Sequence record: NC_016571.1
DNA: 64,000 nt
Direction: 5' to 3' (one strand)
The position numbers and the translations under genes are program-made. This document shows, one piece after another, positions 29,950 through 52,641 of this stretch; the stretch's first letter is position 1; every line of letters begins with the position of its first letter. The notes beneath the pieces were generated by a model that saw only the letters and a list, made by a program, of their open reading frames with translations, searched no databases and was not told the DNA's origin.

Positions 29950-29980
29950 AAAGAAGAAGGGGACCGAAGTCCCCACCTTT
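29950..29980 (-). terminator. UUCG hairpin terminator on minus strand
   Basis: GGGGAC-TTCG-GTCCCC-TTCTTCTTT (minus strand). Confidence 0.65.
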
Positions 29981-29981
29981 A

Positions 29982-32900
29982 TTACATATTAACCATTCCG
30001 CCCCCATTAACGGATTGCTCAAGCAGTCTAACGATCTGCGCGAGTTTAGCGTCACTGGACTGTGCAATGGTTGCAAGTGCTGCATCTCGACTAGCCTGAG
30101 CTTGGTCGTTAACCGCTGCCGGAGAAGGCTGTGGGCTAGATGCTGGTCTTTCTGTTTGTTTAACAGGAGTGACTTTAACAGGAGCAGCTGCCGCAGCACC
30201 AGAAGAAGAACTTGCACCCGTAGGTGGTTCTTTATCGGAACTAGGACTAGCGCTTGCACTACTTCCACTCGTTGGAGAGGAACCTGTTGAACTGGCTGCA
30301 CTTGCTGAAGATGCATCGCTAGCCGGGTCTATTGTTGATGCAGAACCTGTTGGAGCTGGTCCGCCTACATTAGATGGTGCGTTGTTAGCATCTGTTTGGG
30401 CTATGAGGTCTTTAACTGCACCCGCCCCAGTTGGTTTAACGATATCCGCCGTAGTGTCTACGTGGTCTTTAGGGACGTTCTTATCTGGCTCAGCTGGAGT
30501 TTCAGTTTCAGGAGCTGCTGGTTGTTCTGCTGCTCCGCCACCACCGATATCCATATCACCACTACGAAGTTTATTCAGGTATTCGTTATAGTACTTACGA
30601 CGCTCGTCAGTTGCTGGAACTGCGTTACCACCGTTAATACCACGAACCGCTGTATCGAAGTCACCTGTCTTAGCAATAGACAACATCGCTTTGTTGTTCT
30701 TGAGGAAGTTAACAGCAGACTGTGCCATTACGTTTGGATCCTCAGAAACAAGACGAGGGTTCTTAACAACGTCAATCCCTGTTTCCCGTTTAAACTTCTC
30801 GTAGTTAGCTTTACCTGTCAATTGGAACAATCCACGCCCACGATATAACCAACCGTCTTCTGGTTTGGTGTTACCGAGAGAAGGACCCTTAGGAGCACGA
30901 CCGTAAACATACATCGCACGTTCTGCTGGAGACATCGCTGCAACTTTCTGTGCGGTAGCTTGGTCAGGAATGTTCTTGAAGTATTTAAGTAAGGTTGGGG
31001 CAGACCAGTTGGTATTTTCGACAGTCGCCTGATAACCGCCTGTTTCTTTCTTAGCCATAGCTAATGCAAGAGCCAGAACTTTGTTATCACGGAAACCTGC
31101 TTTCACTAAGTGATTCAGCATGAGCTGCTCACCTTGTTCCAGACTCATCTTAATACCTTTGTCTTCTCCTGCCATCTTGATGAATTCAGGGTTGAAGTTC
31201 TCGTTAGCTGTACCTGTAAAGGCACCCGCTGAACCAGCACCACCACCTGGAGCCGACATGGTTGCGTTTGGAGTATAACCACCGCTAGCACCACTTGCTC
31301 CACCGAACCCAGCAAAACCAGAATCATTACTGGTAGATGTTGCACCAGTTTGACCCCCAGCGAAACCACCGCCGTAAACTTCAGCAAGTACTTTGTCAGT
31401 ATCTGCTTTACGTTTGGCAGCTTGAGCACGTTGCTCTGGATCTTCGCCGTCTGCACCTTTACTCTTCTCAGCTTCCATCTCTGGATCTTTCAGTCTAGCT
31501 TCTTGCGCTTTGGCATCCAAGATTTTCAGATACTTATCAGCACGGTCAGCCCACTTACCAGATTTAGAGTTAGGGAATGGAGAAGCTTCAATTTCCCATA
31601 CAGTCATCTGCTTATCACCAACAGTCACAAGTTGTTCTGTTAGCTGACGAGCAATGATTGCTTTGTTGGTAGCAGTAAGTTGTTTCCACCCACGTTCAGG
31701 AACAACACCACGTGACTTCTTAATCTCCTTGAAGTAAGTCATCATGACAGGCAGGAAACGATCCCTGAACCATGTCAGCCAGTTAGTGGCCGCGATATCG
31801 CTATCTATACGGAATGAAGGTTTGAACAGTTCGAGAACTTGACCTGACTTACCAGTGAATCGAGCATCATCACCTATAACCATAATGAAGCTTTCGAGGT
31901 AACGTTCTAAACGCAACACAGCTTCAACACGCCAAGACATGTTATCGATGTTACCGTATGCTGCTAAACGAGCCATTACAAACGGATCCATTTCCTGGTC
32001 TTTCCCAGCGATCATGTCTGACACATCAATGGTCTTGACTTCAGCAGGAGTTTGGAACTTCTTACCTAATGCATCCTGAGATGCACGTGCGGCAGCAGCA
32101 CCAAGTGCGTCCTGAGCACCCATCTCAGCATTTGGGATATCCGTATTGGTTTTCCCACCTGCTTTGGTGGCAGCATCAGTCTGAACAGTCGTAGCGATTT
32201 TCTCAACGGACTCAATAGGGGAAGGAATCAACTCTCTTAACTGAGCTAACTTCTTGTCCACCATTTGTTTCGTTGAAGCATCGTCCATGGTTCCGGTACG
32301 ACTATCAATGCGAACGTTGATGTTGTATGGATAAGGGTCGAGTGTAGCGATGGATTGCTGTACACGTTCGATGATCTGAATTACGTCATACGAGTTAGAC
32401 TTGTCAAACTCAACAATGTCACCCATACGTGCAACGGAGATAGCTGCGGTGTAGATCAGATAGATTGGTTTAAAGCGAGCAACAAACCAAGTCTCGATAG
32501 CATCCTTATCTCTCCAGTTACCTGGGTCGGCATTCATGAACTGTGTGAGGAGTTCTTCGACCGGAGTGTCTTCTTTGAAGCTACCACGGTTATTACGAAT
32601 GACAACATAAGGATAAATAAGTTTCTCAAGTAACATGACACGACGCGCAAGGGAGTTATCAACACTAGGGAGACCGTACATGGCAAAACGTACTTCTTTT
32701 TGTTTTGTCATCTTGTTGTCTTTATCCGTAGCTGTCCCGTACCCGTCTTTGTTTCTAACTATCCCTTTAATCTCATCTTCATGAGCTTCCATTTCGTCAC
32801 GTTTAAAGAAGAACTTATTATCAGAAGAATAGAAGAGACCATAGTTGTTCAGAGTGGAAACAGTTTCAGAGTTAGCCTGACTCATAAGAGCATCAACAAC

Positions 32901-45978: not shown

Positions 45979-46715
45979 TGGAAATTGAAAAGCTGACTAA
46001 AGACCTGGGGCGGGTTGAAGCCGCCCTTAAGGTCTTACCAGATGGTAGCGTAGTTGCACTGCAACGATTGAAGGCTTGTTTCCCTAAACGCTTTGAACAA
46101 TCTAACCTGGCCGACATCGGCGACACAGTCCAGACCATTTTAATGGTTGGTGTAATCGTTGGTGACTATTATGCTTTCTTTGGTGGAATGACCAAAGTAG
46201 TAATGAAGCCGGGTGATATCTACGAAGCGACTCTTGGGAATGATCGTTACTTTGTGCTTGACTTTGAACCAGGTGATGTAGTTATCGAAGCGTTGACTGT
46301 TCCTATGGACGCCAACATCGGTTATTACTATTACTTGGAGTTCACCAAGTATGCTCGCTTACCGTGGTACTTAACCCATGAAGACCTGTTAGGTGTTTAT
46401 GATGAGGCTAAGTTCTATACTGGTAAATCAATGGGCACCAGTAACCAGGCTATCCGAGTTCTCTATGCATTAACGTGCAGAGATCCAAAGAACTTAGATA
46501 TCCCGTTCCGTTACGGTAGCTCTATTAACGATCCCAGCGTTAAACCGAAGATAATCGGTATTAACAACCCTGGTCAGTTGTTGAACTCTACCTTTAGCCG
46601 TTTGGCTTCTGGTTACATGTCCGACAACATTATCTCTGGTATTCTTAATCCTGATACTAAGGTTACGAATCTGGAAGAAGTTATTCGTGGTCTACCAAGT
46701 CGAGGAAATTCATAA
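45975..46715 (+). CDS. putative virion RNA polymerase beta' C-terminal fragment (phiKZ gp176-like)
   Basis: IIGINNPGQLLNSTFSRLASGY...LEEVIRG resembles the RpoC C-terminus; lies immediately upstream of the prohead protease. Confidence 0.55.
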   Translation: MMEIEKLTKDLGRVEAALKVLPDGSVVALQRLKACFPKRFEQSNLADIGDTVQTILMVGVIVGDYYAFFGGMTKVVMKPGDIYEATLGNDRYFVLDFEPGDVVIEALTVPMDANIGYYYYLEFTKYARLPWYLTHEDLLGVYDEAKFYTGKSMGTSNQAIRVLYALTCRDPKNLDIPFRYGSSINDPSVKPKIIGINNPGQLLNSTFSRLASGYMSDNIISGILNPDTKVTNLEEVIRGLPSRGNS

Positions 46716-47566
46716 TGTCCCAAATTTCATTAGGGAACATCATCCTTGCTGGTACTGGTAAGAAAGGGATTCTGGCTCCAGAAGCAAATGGCACCTACCT
46801 GCTTAATGCAGGTGGGTTTAACATCCCTAACCATGCTGGCATTACTTATCCTGCCAACGAGTATGTACTGGATCAGATTAATGAGAACTCTGATTTGCAA
46901 CGCCGTGTTAAAATGGGCTATTGCAAAATGGAAGTTGAACATCCTGAACCATTCATCTATGTGATCGAGAACGGTGTCAAATACCGTCAACCTATCACTG
47001 ACGTACTCCAATGGATCAACCGTCTTCGTTCTTATGACCCAGCTAATATCTGCGGTCTGATTAGTGAAGTGTTGTTTAACTTCGATAATCCGAATGATGT
47101 ACGGGCACCGATTTGGAACCTGATTCGTTGTGAACCATTTGGTCCACGTCGTGAAGAGTTCCGTGAATCACTGGCTAACCCACGTCACAACACTGCGGTA
47201 TCCATCCGTACTCAGATCTCTCCGTTCCGTCCTGGGGATACTCAGAAGAACGTTGAGTTCTGGACTGGTTATGATTGGGTTTCTGAGCCTGGTATGGTCC
47301 ATGCTAATAAACACATGACTGCTGGTTGCGAATCCTTCCTGAATGACTTCGGTCTTAACGACAACATGCAGAAGTTCAGTACTTCTGAAATGATTGAACG
47401 TTTGGATGGTGCGCTGGCTGAAGCAGATAAGAATGCTGAAGCTCTTATCCGTGTTGGTGGTATGGAAGCCCTGGATGACTATCGTCAAATCCTGGGTGGC
47501 ATTAAGGCTAAATACAGCAAAGGTGATTCCATCATTGTTGGTAAGTCATTCACCGATATCTTCTAA
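46715..47566 (+). CDS. prohead (head maturation) serine protease, T4 gp21/phiKZ gp175-like
   Basis: MEVEHP (His), YDPANICG, TAVSIRT (Ser), GYDWVSEPG (Asp). Confidence 0.85.
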   Translation: MSQISLGNIILAGTGKKGILAPEANGTYLLNAGGFNIPNHAGITYPANEYVLDQINENSDLQRRVKMGYCKMEVEHPEPFIYVIENGVKYRQPITDVLQWINRLRSYDPANICGLISEVLFNFDNPNDVRAPIWNLIRCEPFGPRREEFRESLANPRHNTAVSIRTQISPFRPGDTQKNVEFWTGYDWVSEPGMVHANKHMTAGCESFLNDFGLNDNMQKFSTSEMIERLDGALAEADKNAEALIRVGGMEALDDYRQILGGIKAKYSKGDSIIVGKSFTDIF

Positions 47567-47571
47567 TTGAG

Positions 47572-47610
47572 ATAAGTAGGGGTCCTTCGGGATCTCTACT
47601 TATTTTTTAT
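47572..47610 (+). terminator. intrinsic terminator with UUCG loop
   Basis: ATAAGTAGGGGTCC-TTCG-GGATCTCTACTTAT-TTTTT. Confidence 0.8.
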
Positions 47611-47665: not shown

Positions 47666-48322
47666 ATGTCAGAACAAGAAAGCGCTCTCAAAGAAGCTGT
47701 TACCAGTCGTCACATTCACGCAGTAGAGCAAGCACTGGACGCACAGGTTCCTACTCAATGGACAGCTAAGTCCATCAACCTGGCTGACCTGCGCATCGCC
47801 ACACAAGCTCGTGAGCTGGTTATTCAGGGCTACACTTTGAACAGCACCTTTAAAGAGTTCAATGAAGTATGGCTCAGTCTGCATACCGAAGATAAGAAAT
47901 GCATTATCGTCGATCAGGTAGCAACTAAGCTTAAGTATCAGCTGGTTAACTTGTATGCTATCAAACTGGTTAAGTATCTGAACTCTATCATCGGTTTGGA
48001 TCTGGTTCCTCTGGCGCAACAAGACCCAGCAACGCGCACCTGGAAAATGGATGCGGTTATTCTGAACATCGCTTCCAACAAAATCACTGATCACGAGCAT
48101 CTGTTCCGCTTGATGCTGGTTAACCTGTTTGGTATCAGTGAAGATATCGTTGATTTCTCTCTGGCACCTACTTACGGTAAACTCCGTAACTACCTCAGCA
48201 AAACTTATGGTTGGGTTCAGCCTCTTGAACCAGCAGCAGCTGACGATGCAGTTCCTACCATCGAAGCTCTGTCATCCACTGTTGTTGTTTGTGCAACTCA
48301 GGGTAAACTGACTATCGGTTAA
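47666..48322 (+). CDS. hypothetical protein
   Basis: 218 aa, RBS AAGGA. Confidence 0.75.
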   Translation: MSEQESALKEAVTSRHIHAVEQALDAQVPTQWTAKSINLADLRIATQARELVIQGYTLNSTFKEFNEVWLSLHTEDKKCIIVDQVATKLKYQLVNLYAIKLVKYLNSIIGLDLVPLAQQDPATRTWKMDAVILNIASNKITDHEHLFRLMLVNLFGISEDIVDFSLAPTYGKLRNYLSKTYGWVQPLEPAAADDAVPTIEALSSTVVVCATQGKLTIG

Positions 48323-48329
48323 TGTTAAC

Positions 48330-48356
48330 GTTAGAGAGGGTAACACCTCTCTAACC
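48330..48356 (+). terminator. stem-loop
   Basis: GTTAGAGAGG-GGTAACA-CCTCTCTAAC. Confidence 0.55.
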
Positions 48357-48380: not shown

Positions 48381-48824
48381 ATGGATCATTGTACATCCTT
48401 GTTTACTCTTACCGATGATGGTAAACATTACTCACTTAACTTATTCGTCGCTAAGAAAGAAACTATCGACCGCTGGGGGATTGACTTAGTTAAGAAACTC
48501 TTTAAGGCGTATGAAAATAAACAATTACTTCTAGCTACTGATATCGGTGCTATCAACGTTGGTAGTGTCGAGAAAGTAACTATTGGAGAATGGGGATCCA
48601 GATCTCCTGAAGAAGTAGAAGTAACCTCTGTTACTGCTTCCTTGTTAGTCGAGAAAACTGACATTAGCAATTATCTTTATAACAACAATATCCGAATCTC
48701 GGCACAGCTGGTTCCTACCGCTCACGGTCTTAGTTCCGTGGTCCATATCAGCAAGGTTGTCAACTTCGGTAAAAATTATAACCTTTCAACTGTAGTAGGA
48801 GCAAGCCATGCAACCCGTAAATGA
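48381..48824 (+). CDS. hypothetical protein
   Basis: ATG48381 after GGAG. Confidence 0.7.
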   Translation: MDHCTSLFTLTDDGKHYSLNLFVAKKETIDRWGIDLVKKLFKAYENKQLLLATDIGAINVGSVEKVTIGEWGSRSPEEVEVTSVTASLLVEKTDISNYLYNNNIRISAQLVPTAHGLSSVVHISKVVNFGKNYNLSTVVGASHATRK

Positions 48825-49578
48825 AGCATTGATGACTGATGAAGAATTCCTGGTTCACATTGAGAAGGTCATAGAACCTCAAGTAGCTGACTGCGGTAAT
48901 GTTCAATTGCGAGCAGCCACCATTGGTCGTCTGTGTACAATGATCCGGGCTCGCGATAAAGCAATGCACCTTCAGCTCCAAACCGCCAGAACTACTTTCG
49001 CTCGCATCTTAGATGCTAATGGTGATAGTGCCAAGCCTAGCACTGTGGATGATTACCTAAACCTTCGCAAACAGGTTGAGCGTAAACATGATGGCACTCA
49101 TGAAGTCACTCTTTCTATTGTCAATGTCCCATGTGGGGTGGATGGTAAGAAATGGTCAATGGGTGATGAGAAAACCAAGATCTTCCTCAAGACAACCCGT
49201 GAAGAGTTGACCCCGCTTCTTGACAAGATTGTACTTCGAGGTGCGATTGGTGAGACAGATCAGAATACTGTTCGCCAACGGGTGCGCTTAGCTGGGGCAG
49301 GTACTGATTTTGGGATTAGTGAATATTCTAAGATCGATCCAGCTAATGTAGCCGGTGTTTTACTCGGCTATCAGATATCAGGTATTCGTGATGGCTCTGG
49401 CGCATTGGTGATCACTGGTAATGTGAGACTTACCCCAGAGGCAGCAGCGATGATGGAATCTGGAAACTATGTATTTGGCATCCGCAGCACTGTCTCTATG
49501 GACGGTCTTCACAGAGTGATTGATGAACTTCACGCGTTCGATATGTTCCCAGTTCATGAATTGAATACATCTATTTAA
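48808..49578 (+). CDS. protein with a degenerate prohead-protease-like C-terminal domain
   Basis: RGAIGETD, IDPANVAGVL, VFGIRST and AFDMF align by eye with protease motifs but lack His and Ser. Confidence 0.55.
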   Translation: MQPVNEALMTDEEFLVHIEKVIEPQVADCGNVQLRAATIGRLCTMIRARDKAMHLQLQTARTTFARILDANGDSAKPSTVDDYLNLRKQVERKHDGTHEVTLSIVNVPCGVDGKKWSMGDEKTKIFLKTTREELTPLLDKIVLRGAIGETDQNTVRQRVRLAGAGTDFGISEYSKIDPANVAGVLLGYQISGIRDGSGALVITGNVRLTPEAAAMMESGNYVFGIRSTVSMDGLHRVIDELHAFDMFPVHELNTSI

Positions 49579-49672: not shown

Positions 49673-50617
49673 ATGACCACAACAGATCCAAAAACAAAAT
49701 TAAATAAATTCGAAGAAACTAATCTTCTCGAAGCGCTTCATAATAACTCCCGTCGTACAACATCTATTCTACACACTGGTAACGCCTGCTTCTTACAGTG
49801 CTGGTATCCTAACTTTGATTTGGGAATTCCTAGTATGAAAGGACCAGTGTGTCAGATCGTGTATAACGGCGGAAAGCGTTCACCATTTATGGATATGACT
49901 GATGCCGGTAAACTACTGGCATTGGCAAAACAAGTTCGCTCTCATGACTGGAAGATGTTCCCTGGTTATGAAGGTACTCATGAACTTAAAACAACCCGCG
50001 TTAAACTAACCTGGAATAAACTCTGGTTCGTCGATGCTCGTTGTCCTCGTTTCCAGACAGGTGATTTTATCCCTACGGATAAATTCCTGGTGAACTTGAT
50101 TGGTTCACTCATCATGTTTATTGCAGGTGGGAAGGGGGTTGATGAATATCCGGTTTCCGCAGTTGGTACCTATGCCGATATGACTCATAAAGATGAGTTG
50201 TTTGCGGTAACTGATTTCGGATACTCTTCCGTCAACTCAAAACCTTCCTGGTTGAAATACACCGCTACAAAATCTACTAAGTCTGGGTCATTAGTAATGA
50301 CTTATGGAGAAGTCCAATTCCATATTAAGAATACCTTTACCCGTGGGGTTGATTGGGAATTCTTTATTGGACAGATCGCCAAGGCGGTGATTGATGTAGC
50401 TTGTGGTGATCATCAGTACGTTGAGGTCTTCCTCGGTCATCCTGTACTTGATAAGTACAATACCTATGTTCGTAAGTATGTTGAGGGGGATCGTACCTTT
50501 ATGGTTATCAACTCCGACATTCATGCTTACAACAATAAAGTTATGTTCATGCTGGGAGAAAAGAATACTCAGCATTTGAAAGATTTCTTTACCACGATTA
50601 TCAACTACCACAAATAA
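49673..50617 (+). CDS. hypothetical early protein
   Basis: 314 aa, RBS GAGGA. Confidence 0.75.
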   Translation: MTTTDPKTKLNKFEETNLLEALHNNSRRTTSILHTGNACFLQCWYPNFDLGIPSMKGPVCQIVYNGGKRSPFMDMTDAGKLLALAKQVRSHDWKMFPGYEGTHELKTTRVKLTWNKLWFVDARCPRFQTGDFIPTDKFLVNLIGSLIMFIAGGKGVDEYPVSAVGTYADMTHKDELFAVTDFGYSSVNSKPSWLKYTATKSTKSGSLVMTYGEVQFHIKNTFTRGVDWEFFIGQIAKAVIDVACGDHQYVEVFLGHPVLDKYNTYVRKYVEGDRTFMVINSDIHAYNNKVMFMLGEKNTQHLKDFFTTIINYHK

Positions 50618-50696
50618 GAATAAAAAGGTTTACCCCGGGATGACCGGGGAGCCTTTGACAAGTGTCATAAACCAACCAATAAGCGAGGAGCTTATA

Positions 50697-51545
50697 ATGA
50701 AAGAAGCAAATGTAATCCCAACCCCAAATAAAGGCTACGTTAAGAACATCGGTACTTTCACATTGCCCGTTCCGTCCTACTGCATGGTGCTCTCGAAGTT
50801 TCAATTGTCATACGCTTTGGTGTATGACGAGAATATCCAGTTTGTACAGGACCACAATGTTTCTCCTGCTCTCACCAAAGACGACGCTAGAGCAATCCTT
50901 ATGGGCATCGCTGATGTAGAACGTCTTGAGAAAGAGAAACGTTATGACATCTTCAAGAAGAAGATTGTCAAAATAAGTGGCGGACGTGAATTCACCATAG
51001 CGGGTTTAGGGTATCGTTTAGGTAATGTTCATATCCATGGTCGTGAAGAGATGGCTCGTTTAAAAGATTTACTCACTGCTTTTGTTTGGGGTAAGTCGAG
51101 AAATGAAATGGGCCCATTCACTATAGACCTTGGTGAAATAAGAACACACGGAGAGATTGAACGTTTTGGTAATGTCTCCAAATACGTAACCTGGAGCATC
51201 CGTATTAATGATGGGCTTTGTGTTGAAGATCGTGGTCGCCTAGATATCGTGGGACCATACGACGGAATCCGTTATCACTTCGGAACCGAAGAAATCTTAT
51301 CAGAGATCATCAAAGGCGTTAAGACGCTACTTAATTCAGATGCAACCGAATACCGGTTCACTGAAGAAAAAGCTGTTAGCGTTGGACTGAGGCTCTTTAA
51401 AACCACCATCCATGATGGTTCTATTGCCGTGGGTATTTCAACAGATATTCTCTTGCCGAATCAAAGAACGTTTATGTTCTTAGGTAAAGAGAGTGGTGAG
51501 AAGTTCCTGAAGTTCCTTCGCAAAGGTAAGAAGTTATTTAAGTAA
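50697..51545 (+). CDS. hypothetical early protein
   Basis: ATG50697 after GAGGAG. Confidence 0.75.
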   Translation: MKEANVIPTPNKGYVKNIGTFTLPVPSYCMVLSKFQLSYALVYDENIQFVQDHNVSPALTKDDARAILMGIADVERLEKEKRYDIFKKKIVKISGGREFTIAGLGYRLGNVHIHGREEMARLKDLLTAFVWGKSRNEMGPFTIDLGEIRTHGEIERFGNVSKYVTWSIRINDGLCVEDRGRLDIVGPYDGIRYHFGTEEILSEIIKGVKTLLNSDATEYRFTEEKAVSVGLRLFKTTIHDGSIAVGISTDILLPNQRTFMFLGKESGEKFLKFLRKGKKLFK

Positions 51546-51636
51546 ATAGTAATTAAGGGGAGTGATCCGATCAAAAGCATCACTCTCCTGGACAGAGTTC
51601 CACAAACCCATAGTCAAACCTAAAGAGGACTAAACC

Positions 51637-52641
51637 ATGTTAAAAGCACGTCACTGTTATGCAACTGAAACTGCTTTCCACAACGCACTGTTCCGTGAAA
51701 AAGCAACTGCTCATGTCTTTGCGCTGAATCCGGCAGGAAGGGTGCAAGTCAAATTCCTTATCGGTAATGAAGAAACGGCCGTAACTGGTCGTGAGAATGT
51801 CTTCTTCATTATCGACAGCGCTGACCGCAACCGGATGTTTAATCTCCGTGATGCCAAAAATATACTCGATCTCATTGCGATCATCCGCGATAAGCGAGTC
51901 TCCACTTATCAGGGCGCAGGGTTAGTTTACGATACCTCGGTCGGTGGTAAGTACATTCGTCGATATCTTCGTACTTCTCATCAACAAGCTCATGAATCCA
52001 TCATCAGTAATGATGGGATGGTTCCTCTTGATCTCAAGAATGATCCTAAGTTTGCTGAGAAGCATTGGGAAGAAAGCCTGAATCGGTTTGAAGAAATCAT
52101 CCGAGAATTCATCAATGTTTGTGATGGGAAAAAGGTATCCATTAATAAATGGTTCCGTCAACGTCGTTATATGATGCTCCCTCTTCATAATGCGTTCAAT
52201 GGTCCATTCAAAGTTCATAGTCTGCGATTGAATTGGACTCAGGACATGAGAGTGAACAATATCGCATTCCAAGTCGGTGAGAAGACTGTATTATTCTACG
52301 CACTTCATAAAGAAAATACCTCTTCCCTTACCGATGTTACCGAGGGGTTCATTGACGCCATTTATCGTATTCTTGATGAATATAAAGTATTCGTAGATGA
52401 CGACGACATGTTCGTCAGTTCAACTCCAGTTATTCTGTCAGATGACAGAAAACACTTTATGGAATATGTCGGTGGCCGTGGTGTTGGAGGCGATTCTTAC
52501 GAAGGTGGTTTCAGAACCATTATTCTTAATGTCAACTCTGATGCTTCACCAGCATGGTCCAAAATCCATTTCCATTATGAACCTAATTTTATTTGTGATT
52601 TGGTTGATGGGTTACGCTTCTGTACTGATTTCGAGATCTAA
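51637..52641 (+). CDS. hypothetical early protein
   Basis: 334 aa, RBS GAGGA. Confidence 0.75.
   Translation: MLKARHCYATETAFHNALFREKATAHVFALNPAGRVQVKFLIGNEETAVTGRENVFFIIDSADRNRMFNLRDAKNILDLIAIIRDKRVSTYQGAGLVYDTSVGGKYIRRYLRTSHQQAHESIISNDGMVPLDLKNDPKFAEKHWEESLNRFEEIIREFINVCDGKKVSINKWFRQRRYMMLPLHNAFNGPFKVHSLRLNWTQDMRVNNIAFQVGEKTVLFYALHKENTSSLTDVTEGFIDAIYRILDEYKVFVDDDDMFVSSTPVILSDDRKHFMEYVGGRGVGGDSYEGGFRTIILNVNSDASPAWSKIHFHYEPNFICDLVDGLRFCTDFEI

Follow-up and report, generated by a model that had tools for sequence, protein, structure and literature searches.

OBP_286, a gene of Pseudomonas phage OBP (NC_016571; 285 kb, phiKZ-related), is very probably a dead copy of the phage's own S80 head protease. 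The window analyzed is a stretch of 64,000 nucleotides (genome positions 220758–284757), and coordinates below refer to the window unless the genome is named. The gene occupies 48808–49578 on the plus strand. It starts with an ATG at 48808, has a GGAG ribosome site upstream, reaches its stop at 49578, and encodes 256 amino acids. This open reading frame (ORF) is the annotated OBP_286 ("hypothetical protein"), with a 100% tblastn match to phage OBP. We assign it as a non-catalytic paralog of the S80 prohead protease from the ORF itself, the family of its homologues (alignment A2), and an hhalign comparison with S80. The parent family is represented by OBP_283 (46715–47566, plus strand), a "head maturation protease" of the active S80 type (Pfam Peptidase_S80, expect value (E) 8.8e-73; PHROG 3014).

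Many genes of the giant, phiKZ-related phages are unexplained, and the first report of inactive head-protease copies in giant phages dates from 2017 (gp117). What is new is that OBP carries such a copy, apparently in a second lineage, which lacks the His/Ser pair but keeps Glu, Arg, and Asp. The question at stake is whether these pseudo-proteases tune capsid maturation or act in the conflict between phage and host.

Sequence, fold, and termini of OBP_286

Pairwise BLASTP between OBP_286 and OBP_283 aligned only the DPAN segment, with an E value of 0.12 that is not significant. OBP_286 alone gave zero direct matches in Pfam or PHROGs. As plain BLASTP is not significant, the case for homology is built on profiles and structure. 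With a three-sequence profile, HMMER was run in full over 1.8 billion representatives and yielded 19 relatives, and their alignment (A2) defines the OBP_286 family. Five members are long forms of 256–270 amino acids; the remainder have 145–190 amino acids and are without the N-terminal part. A second alignment (A3) was made from 21 diverse S80 proteases. Compared by hhalign, A2 and A3 match with a probability of 95.3% and an E value of 2.1e-8 over 148 columns, in which residues 87–248 of OBP_286 are paired with residues 17–190 of OBP_283.

Individual members of the family also show this relationship. Pfam S80 matches, from weak to significant, are found in 7 of the 19, and two of these, P0020 (34.4 bits) and P0019 (27.3 bits), exceed the curated Pfam cut-off of 23.4. 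P0002, an ortholog 62% identical to OBP_286, has a collinear S80 match that is sub-threshold. By plain tblastn, P0020 is around 30% identical to real proteases from giant phages of Serratia and Erwinia. The A2 hidden Markov model (HMM) alone picks up the annotated proteases of two phages, Klebsiella phage Eowyn (E = 6.8e-6) and SPN3US (E = 3.9e-9). Against the sequences of the Protein Data Bank (PDB), the A2 profile gave chance S100 matches only.

The initial annotation had paired four motifs of the two proteins by eye. The profile–profile alignment reproduces all four pairings, as does a separate, independent MAFFT L-INS-i alignment with T4 gp21 and phiKZ gp175 among its sequences. AIGETDQN of OBP_286 aligns with CKMEVEHP of OBP_283, which places Gln152 (codon 49261–49263, plus strand) at the catalytic His76, equivalent to His85 of T4 gp21. 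KIDPANVAGVL aligns with SYDPANICGLI. VFGIRST aligns with TAVSIRT, and Gly224 (codon 49477–49479, plus strand) occupies the position of the catalytic Ser163, equivalent to Ser140 of T4 gp21. In the fourth pairing, LHAFDMF with WTGYDWV, Asp245 falls at Asp187. The absence of the histidine and the change of serine to glycine, both read earlier from the motifs, therefore hold in both alignments.

The residues His76, Ser163, and Asp187 of OBP_283 are invariant across the 21 homologues. In the SPN3US protease gp245 the triad is His77, Ser153, and Asp178 (PMC5694885), and the mutation S153A abolishes its self-processing (PMC7411985). His and Ser occur together in 21 of 21 sampled proteases and in none of the 19 members of the OBP_286 family. 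The His column of the family contains Q in 11 members, H in 4, and R, T, Y, or C in the others; the Ser column contains G in 8, S in 6, A in 4, and T in 1. Single retentions are found, with His accompanied by Ala or Gly in four members and Ser accompanied by Gln in six. These may be flips rather than relics, because the codons for Gln and His, and those for the neighboring Gly, Ala, and Ser, are one base apart. The third triad residue, Asp245, is retained in 18 of the 19. Glu73, Arg165, and Asp187 of OBP_283 correspond to Glu149, Arg226, and Asp245 of OBP_286, and this Glu, Arg, and Asp are invariant in the sampled proteases. A conserved Asn position is also common to OBP_286 and the S80 proteases. 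We found no alternative conserved nucleophile near the former active site; Ser227 is variable across the family. Judged from these columns, OBP_286 is unable to use the Ser/His mechanism.

The fold was predicted with AlphaFold2. The model obtained from the 19-sequence alignment has a predicted local distance difference test score (pLDDT) of 82.7, while three sequences alone gave a pLDDT of 56, too poor for use. In a Foldseek search of the PDB, probability 1.0 was reached by the three chains of T4 gp21 (5JBL) and by nothing else. VIA-align, which is independent of Foldseek and was run against 48,161 chains, placed 5jbl_A first with a Z score of 8.6, a root-mean-square deviation of 3.0 Å over 125 residues, and 18% identity, covering model residues 87–249. 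The runner-up had a Z score of 5.5, and the lower matches are helices aligned to the N-terminal arm. The varicella-zoster virus (VZV) protease scored Z 4.5. In the ESM Atlas, S80 clusters are at the top both by features (0.91) and by structure (template modeling score 0.52). Neighbors of the model in BFVD include many prohead proteases, together with small uncharacterized giant-phage proteins, among them ones from Eowyn, 201phi2-1, Phabio, Psa21, and RAY. T4 gp21 is the sole clear PDB neighbor of the predicted model, and OBP_286 is predicted to have the herpesvirus/T4 gp21-type protease fold.

The protease-fold domain comprises residues 87–249 (49066–49554, plus strand) and corresponds approximately to protease residues 17–190, as delimited by hhalign, Foldseek, VIA-align, and the ESM Atlas. 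It is preceded by an N-terminal extension of residues 1–86 (48808–49065, plus strand). The extra helical region noted in the initial annotation is seen in the model as two long helices, at 11–29 and 36–70, and the linker at 61–78 has a pLDDT below 50 and is predicted to be disordered. The description of OBP_286 as a catalytically dead copy of the protease fold with an added helical region is thus backed by sequence profiles, predicted fold, and residue columns, and similarity to prohead proteases was found by profile comparison as well as by structure.

The tip of this extension is its most constrained part. The first 15 residues, MQPVNEAL(M/L)TDEEFL (48808–48852, plus strand), are near-identical in the five long forms, which elsewhere are 34–62% identical, and nearly so in the fragment P0011 (MQPLNEALLTDEEFI). 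There are synonymous differences within the 15-mer, and therefore the constraint acts on the protein. The 15-mer was found in no other OBP ORF, and no protein was found in which the arm is joined to a different domain. Capsid-targeting sequences (CTS) of the T4 type are N-terminal peptides that several packaged proteins of one phage have in common and that are cleaved after Glu. We considered the 15-mer as such a sequence and rejected this, since it is absent from every other OBP ORF, the N-terminal part has no conserved S/A/G-x-E motif, and the protein carries no virion label. Counts of S/A/G-x-E motifs across the family show neither a consistent excess nor a deficit, and no site is conserved. 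At the other end of the protein, a C-terminal L-x-T-[ST]-I tail is conserved among the long forms.

The last aligned position of OBP_286, equivalent to protease residue 190, lies about eight residues before its end, while OBP_283 runs to residue 283. OBP_286 is therefore without the C-terminal part, the propeptide, of OBP_283. In OBP_283 this part contains two motifs, G-C-E206 (204–206) and G-M-E251 (249–251), that are invariant or nearly so in the 21 S80 proteases and fit the S/A/G-x-E rule. From their sequence, the motifs at Glu206 and Glu251 are likely the self-processing sites that release the C-terminal propeptide. In SPN3US gp245, the C-terminal propeptide is the part inferred to bring the protease into the prohead (PMC7411985).

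Distribution, rate of evolution, and gene neighborhood

The order of protease, OBP_284-like gene, and dead paralog is found in OBP, Pantoea phage Survivor, Edwardsiella phage pEt-SU, Serratia phage Yubaba, and the contigs L016 and L017. At the syntenic site in contig L030, Aeromonas phage D3, and contigs L028 and L029, the dead paralog was undetectable, and the OBP_284-like gene still follows the protease (the match in L029 is weak). As the protease of L030 is 75% identical to OBP_283, the absence of the paralog from so close a relative indicates that OBP_286 is dispensable. In phiKZ no ortholog was found by the family HMM, and the protease there is followed by a convergent gene.

Members of the family also occur elsewhere in genomes. 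Eowyn has two copies and Moabite has one, all of them away from the head genes, and those of Eowyn lie among small hypothetical genes. These are short members (146–172 amino acids), located at 236847–237257 of Moabite (NC_048792; L034) and at 29957–30475 and 249748–250188 of Eowyn (NC_070650). The two Eowyn copies belong to different subclades; one retains the Ser and the other has lost it.

Between OBP and L016, OBP_283 is 90% identical and OBP_281, OBP_282, OBP_284, and OBP_287 are 70–87% identical, while OBP_286 is only 35% identical. By this comparison of sequences, OBP_286 is among the fastest-evolving genes of its locus and evolves several times faster than the S80 protease. Its frame is nevertheless open and of full length in relatives down to 26–29% identity, and nine columns are invariant or nearly so. 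In an unrooted maximum-likelihood tree, the dead family falls on one side of a branch with a Shimodaira–Hasegawa-like approximate likelihood ratio test (SH-aLRT) value of 91, apart from all sampled proteases. A single old origin of the family is possible; it is not established by this tree, because the tree is unrooted and its branches are long.

The paralog was earlier placed two genes after the protease. It is in fact the third, with OBP_284 and OBP_285 in between. Directly after the OBP_283 stop there is a terminator-like hairpin of 17 base pairs with a T-run (47569–47606, with its tail to 47617, plus strand). A second one, with the same TTATGTTTGTT tail, follows OBP_284 and precedes OBP_285 and OBP_286 (48330–48355, with its tail to 48368, plus strand). 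The tail, TTATGTnTGTT, has eight copies in the OBP genome, of which seven are preceded by a GC-rich hairpin and three lie between convergent genes. Because of these three, the tail was read as a phage-specific terminator signature. For the same reason (three of the seven hairpin-linked copies) we rejected the hairpin with TTATG as a late promoter of the phiKZ style. The TATG embedded in the tail resembles the core of the phiKZ late promoter, and the module may have a dual role. Further copies of this module in the OBP genome are at 71875, 84780, 92637, 96247 (minus strand), and 215231 (minus strand). As predicted elements, the terminator-like hairpins set OBP_286 apart from the protease/head operon.

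OBP_284 (47666–48322, plus strand) is found after the protease in every relative examined. It is conserved and is without a family or fold assignment; its ESM Atlas model is poor (pLDDT 0.37). Identity is 51–71% in the closer relatives and 29–38% in Aeromonas phage D3 and L028, with a weaker match in L029. In OBP it is flanked by the hairpins. Far better conserved than OBP_286, it may perhaps be the more important gene without an assignment at this locus. OBP_285 (48381–48824, plus strand) is a small gene whose stop overlaps the start of OBP_286 by 17 nucleotides. Among the 11 genomes and contigs compared at this site it is present in OBP and L016 only, with 35% identity between them. We considered it as a further copy of the protease fold and rejected this, as it has no detectable relation to either protease family.

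Downstream of OBP_286 there are three consecutive genes without a family, OBP_287, OBP_288, and OBP_289 (49673–52641), which encode proteins of about 300–335 amino acids. OBP_287 is 73% identical in L016 and just 25–29% in the remaining relatives, and OBP_288 has a sub-threshold match to DUF7035. Elsewhere in the genome, OBP_181 (genome 166188–166646; L025:3189–3647) encodes a hypothetical protein of 152 amino acids. Its first 30 or so residues match the N-terminal strand motif of S80 and the rest does not; the score is 24.3 bits in Pfam, above the cut-off, and the A3 HMM gives an E value of 0.0025. OBP_181 may represent a third gene of OBP that derives from the protease, in a more degenerate state.

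Possible roles of OBP_286

The initial annotation suggested that the protein could time or regulate head maturation, serve as a substrate-binding scaffold, or act as a decoy. We tentatively favor a reading of OBP_286 as a binder. The protein very probably descends from the phiKZ gp175-type S80 protease, keeps the β-barrel core of the mature protease, and can no longer cut. It would act stoichiometrically and not as an enzyme: the conserved 15-residue tip would anchor it to a conserved partner, and the fast-changing protease-like body would hold, uncut, a ligand of the type that fits the protease groove. Binding is suggested because the family's conserved positions surround the site that was once active. 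The unvarying tip, set on a fast-changing body, points to a conserved partner. With this mechanism as stated we have limited confidence, and several points weigh against it. Fast evolution and patchiness would equally fit a non-essential scaffold-like protein or relaxed constraint. The retained Glu, Arg, and Asp may be structural instead of ligand-binding. The N-terminal arm is missing in most members and so is not essential to the basic function of the family. The paralog also stays beside the protease operon in five lineages, which could mean a link to head maturation, and this stable site keeps a regulatory reading alive.

That regulatory reading, in which OBP_286 is built into head maturation, is slightly less probable. 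By assembling together with OBP_283, or by binding the substrates of that protease, the protein would slow or restrict cleavage; alternatively, it would be a non-essential component of the prohead core. Dead paralogs often regulate their active partners, and OBP_286 is a protease paralog with the same conserved core residues. Even where identity has fallen to 29%, it keeps a place one or two genes downstream of the operon of the protease; this holds for OBP, Survivor, pEt-SU, Yubaba, L016, and L017. T4 gp21 is oligomeric (a pentamer), and the T4 core contains non-essential proteins (PMC9958956). However, OBP_286 is without the propeptide proposed to direct the protease into proheads (PMC7411985), and no S/A/G-x-E cleavage motif is conserved in its family. 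It is labeled hypothetical, while neighbors detected by mass spectrometry are labeled virion proteins; its absence from the virion is read from the product names of the record only. The paralog is missing from phages with near-identical proteases, and between OBP and L016 it is 35% identical where its supposed partner is 90% identical. Terminator-like hairpins stand between it and the head operon, and the copies in Eowyn and Moabite are far from head genes. It is unlikely, though to a lesser extent than the readings that follow, that the protease fold was reused for a role unrelated to the protease or its ligands, such as a structural oligomer or a host-takeover factor. The family lies across a long branch from all sampled proteases, has motifs of its own (the C-terminal L-x-T-[ST]-I tail and the N-terminal 15-mer), and has some members among small genes without an assigned function. 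The best conserved positions of the family (GE, IR, and FD) are nevertheless the same ones that the proteases conserve around the active site, thus suggesting that the old surface is still in use.

A decaying, functionless remnant of a duplicated protease gene would account for the lost catalytic residues, the fast evolution, and the patchy distribution, and the 2017 paper raised the same reading for SPN3US gp117 (PMC5694885). We consider it very unlikely for OBP_286, since the frame remains open and of full length down to 26–29% identity, nine columns and the 15-mer are invariant or nearly so (the latter despite synonymous change), and the fold is confidently predicted from the family alignment. 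Least credible of all is a protease that is still active through other residues. The triad Asp245 and the neighboring Arg226 are kept, and some relatives retain His or Ser singly; but no family member has the pair, OBP_286 has neither, and Ser227, which varies, leaves no conserved alternative nucleophile.

Returning to the binder reading, the evidence leans against a core role in head assembly and fits an accessory or decoy-type role better, because OBP_286 is dispensable, evolves very fast, has no propeptide, is insulated by hairpins, and has relatives among small accessory genes. An accessory, conflict-facing role, as a trap or decoy around the protease or its recognition, is slightly more likely than that of a built-in regulator of head maturation, given the dispensability, the rate, the variation in copy number, and the missing propeptide. 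Escape mutations from Type I CBASS (cyclic oligonucleotide-based antiphage signaling system) map to prohead proteases (bioRxiv 10.1101/2023.05.21.541620). A bolder proposal, to which we give little weight, is a tip-anchored, diversifying bait made from a dead protease. It would serve as a decoy or sponge, for example shielding the protease or its products from host immune systems of a type triggered by prohead proteases, and would have evolved at least twice from S80, in the lineages of OBP_286 and gp117. The dispensable, fast-evolving OBP_286 with its invariant 15-residue tip provides a concrete experimental handle.

Comparison with known systems

With the S80 proteases (phiKZ gp175, SPN3US gp245, and OBP_283; PF20034), OBP_286 shares the predicted fold, the collinear core, and the Asn, Glu, Arg, and Asp positions. 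It differs from them in the loss of His, Ser, and the C-terminal propeptide with its G-x-E sites, in its N-terminal extension, in being non-essential, and in its faster evolution. Its best solved structural neighbor is T4 gp21 (PDB ID: 5JBL; Peptidase S77), in which His85 and Ser140 stand at the positions of Gln152 and Gly224. Direct sequence similarity between OBP_286 and T4 gp21 is not detectable. The idea that T4 gp68 is a dead paralog of gp21 was dropped, as its sequence gives no support. Among pseudoenzyme regulators, the iRhom pseudoproteases and the trypanosome prozyme of S-adenosylmethionine decarboxylase (AdoMetDC; PMC5201418) resemble OBP_286 in that the catalytic residues are lost and the fold and neighboring residues are kept; the likeness is one of analogy only.

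The closest precedent is SPN3US gp117, described as a diverged homolog of the protease (PMC5694885; Front Microbiol 2017, section 17). The same paper lists similar genes in the Erwinia phages Kwan (gp144) and Stratton (gp135), in 201phi2-1 (gp206), and in PhiPA3 (gp143); OBP is unmentioned. Its authors describe the occurrence of such a paralog of the protease within a phage genome as "unprecedented" and consider whether gp117 could be what remains of a protease. We found no functional work on gp117-type paralogs in the literature after 2017. In RefSeq and other records, gp117-type paralogs are labeled "head maturation protease" (L032:3185–3670 in SPN3US, L037:298–729 in Kwan, and L039:301–783 in SPLA3). 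Through this shared label, those genomes show two "head maturation protease" genes, an annotation problem that the present comparison flags.

OBP_286 is like the gp117 type in being a second, shortened S80-like gene of a giant phage beside a genuine protease, with an incomplete triad. The C-terminal region is absent in both, the catalytic His is unaligned, and the Glu, Arg, and Asp positions are kept. In contrast to gp117, OBP_286 has lost the Ser as well as the His, carries an N-terminal helical arm, and sits just downstream of the protease operon. To compare the two, an alignment of the gp117 family (A5) was built. A5 matches the real proteases with an E value of 7e-9 and A2 matches them with 2e-8, while A5 and A2 match each other with a probability of 83% and an E value of 8.7e-6. 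An A2 HMM search of SPN3US found the real protease and not gp117. As the dead families match each other less than each matches the real proteases, they appear to be separate offshoots of S80, and the OBP_286 lineage is most simply a second one, distinct from that of gp117. Glu, Arg, and Asp are kept in both families, and in neither is the His or the Ser conserved.

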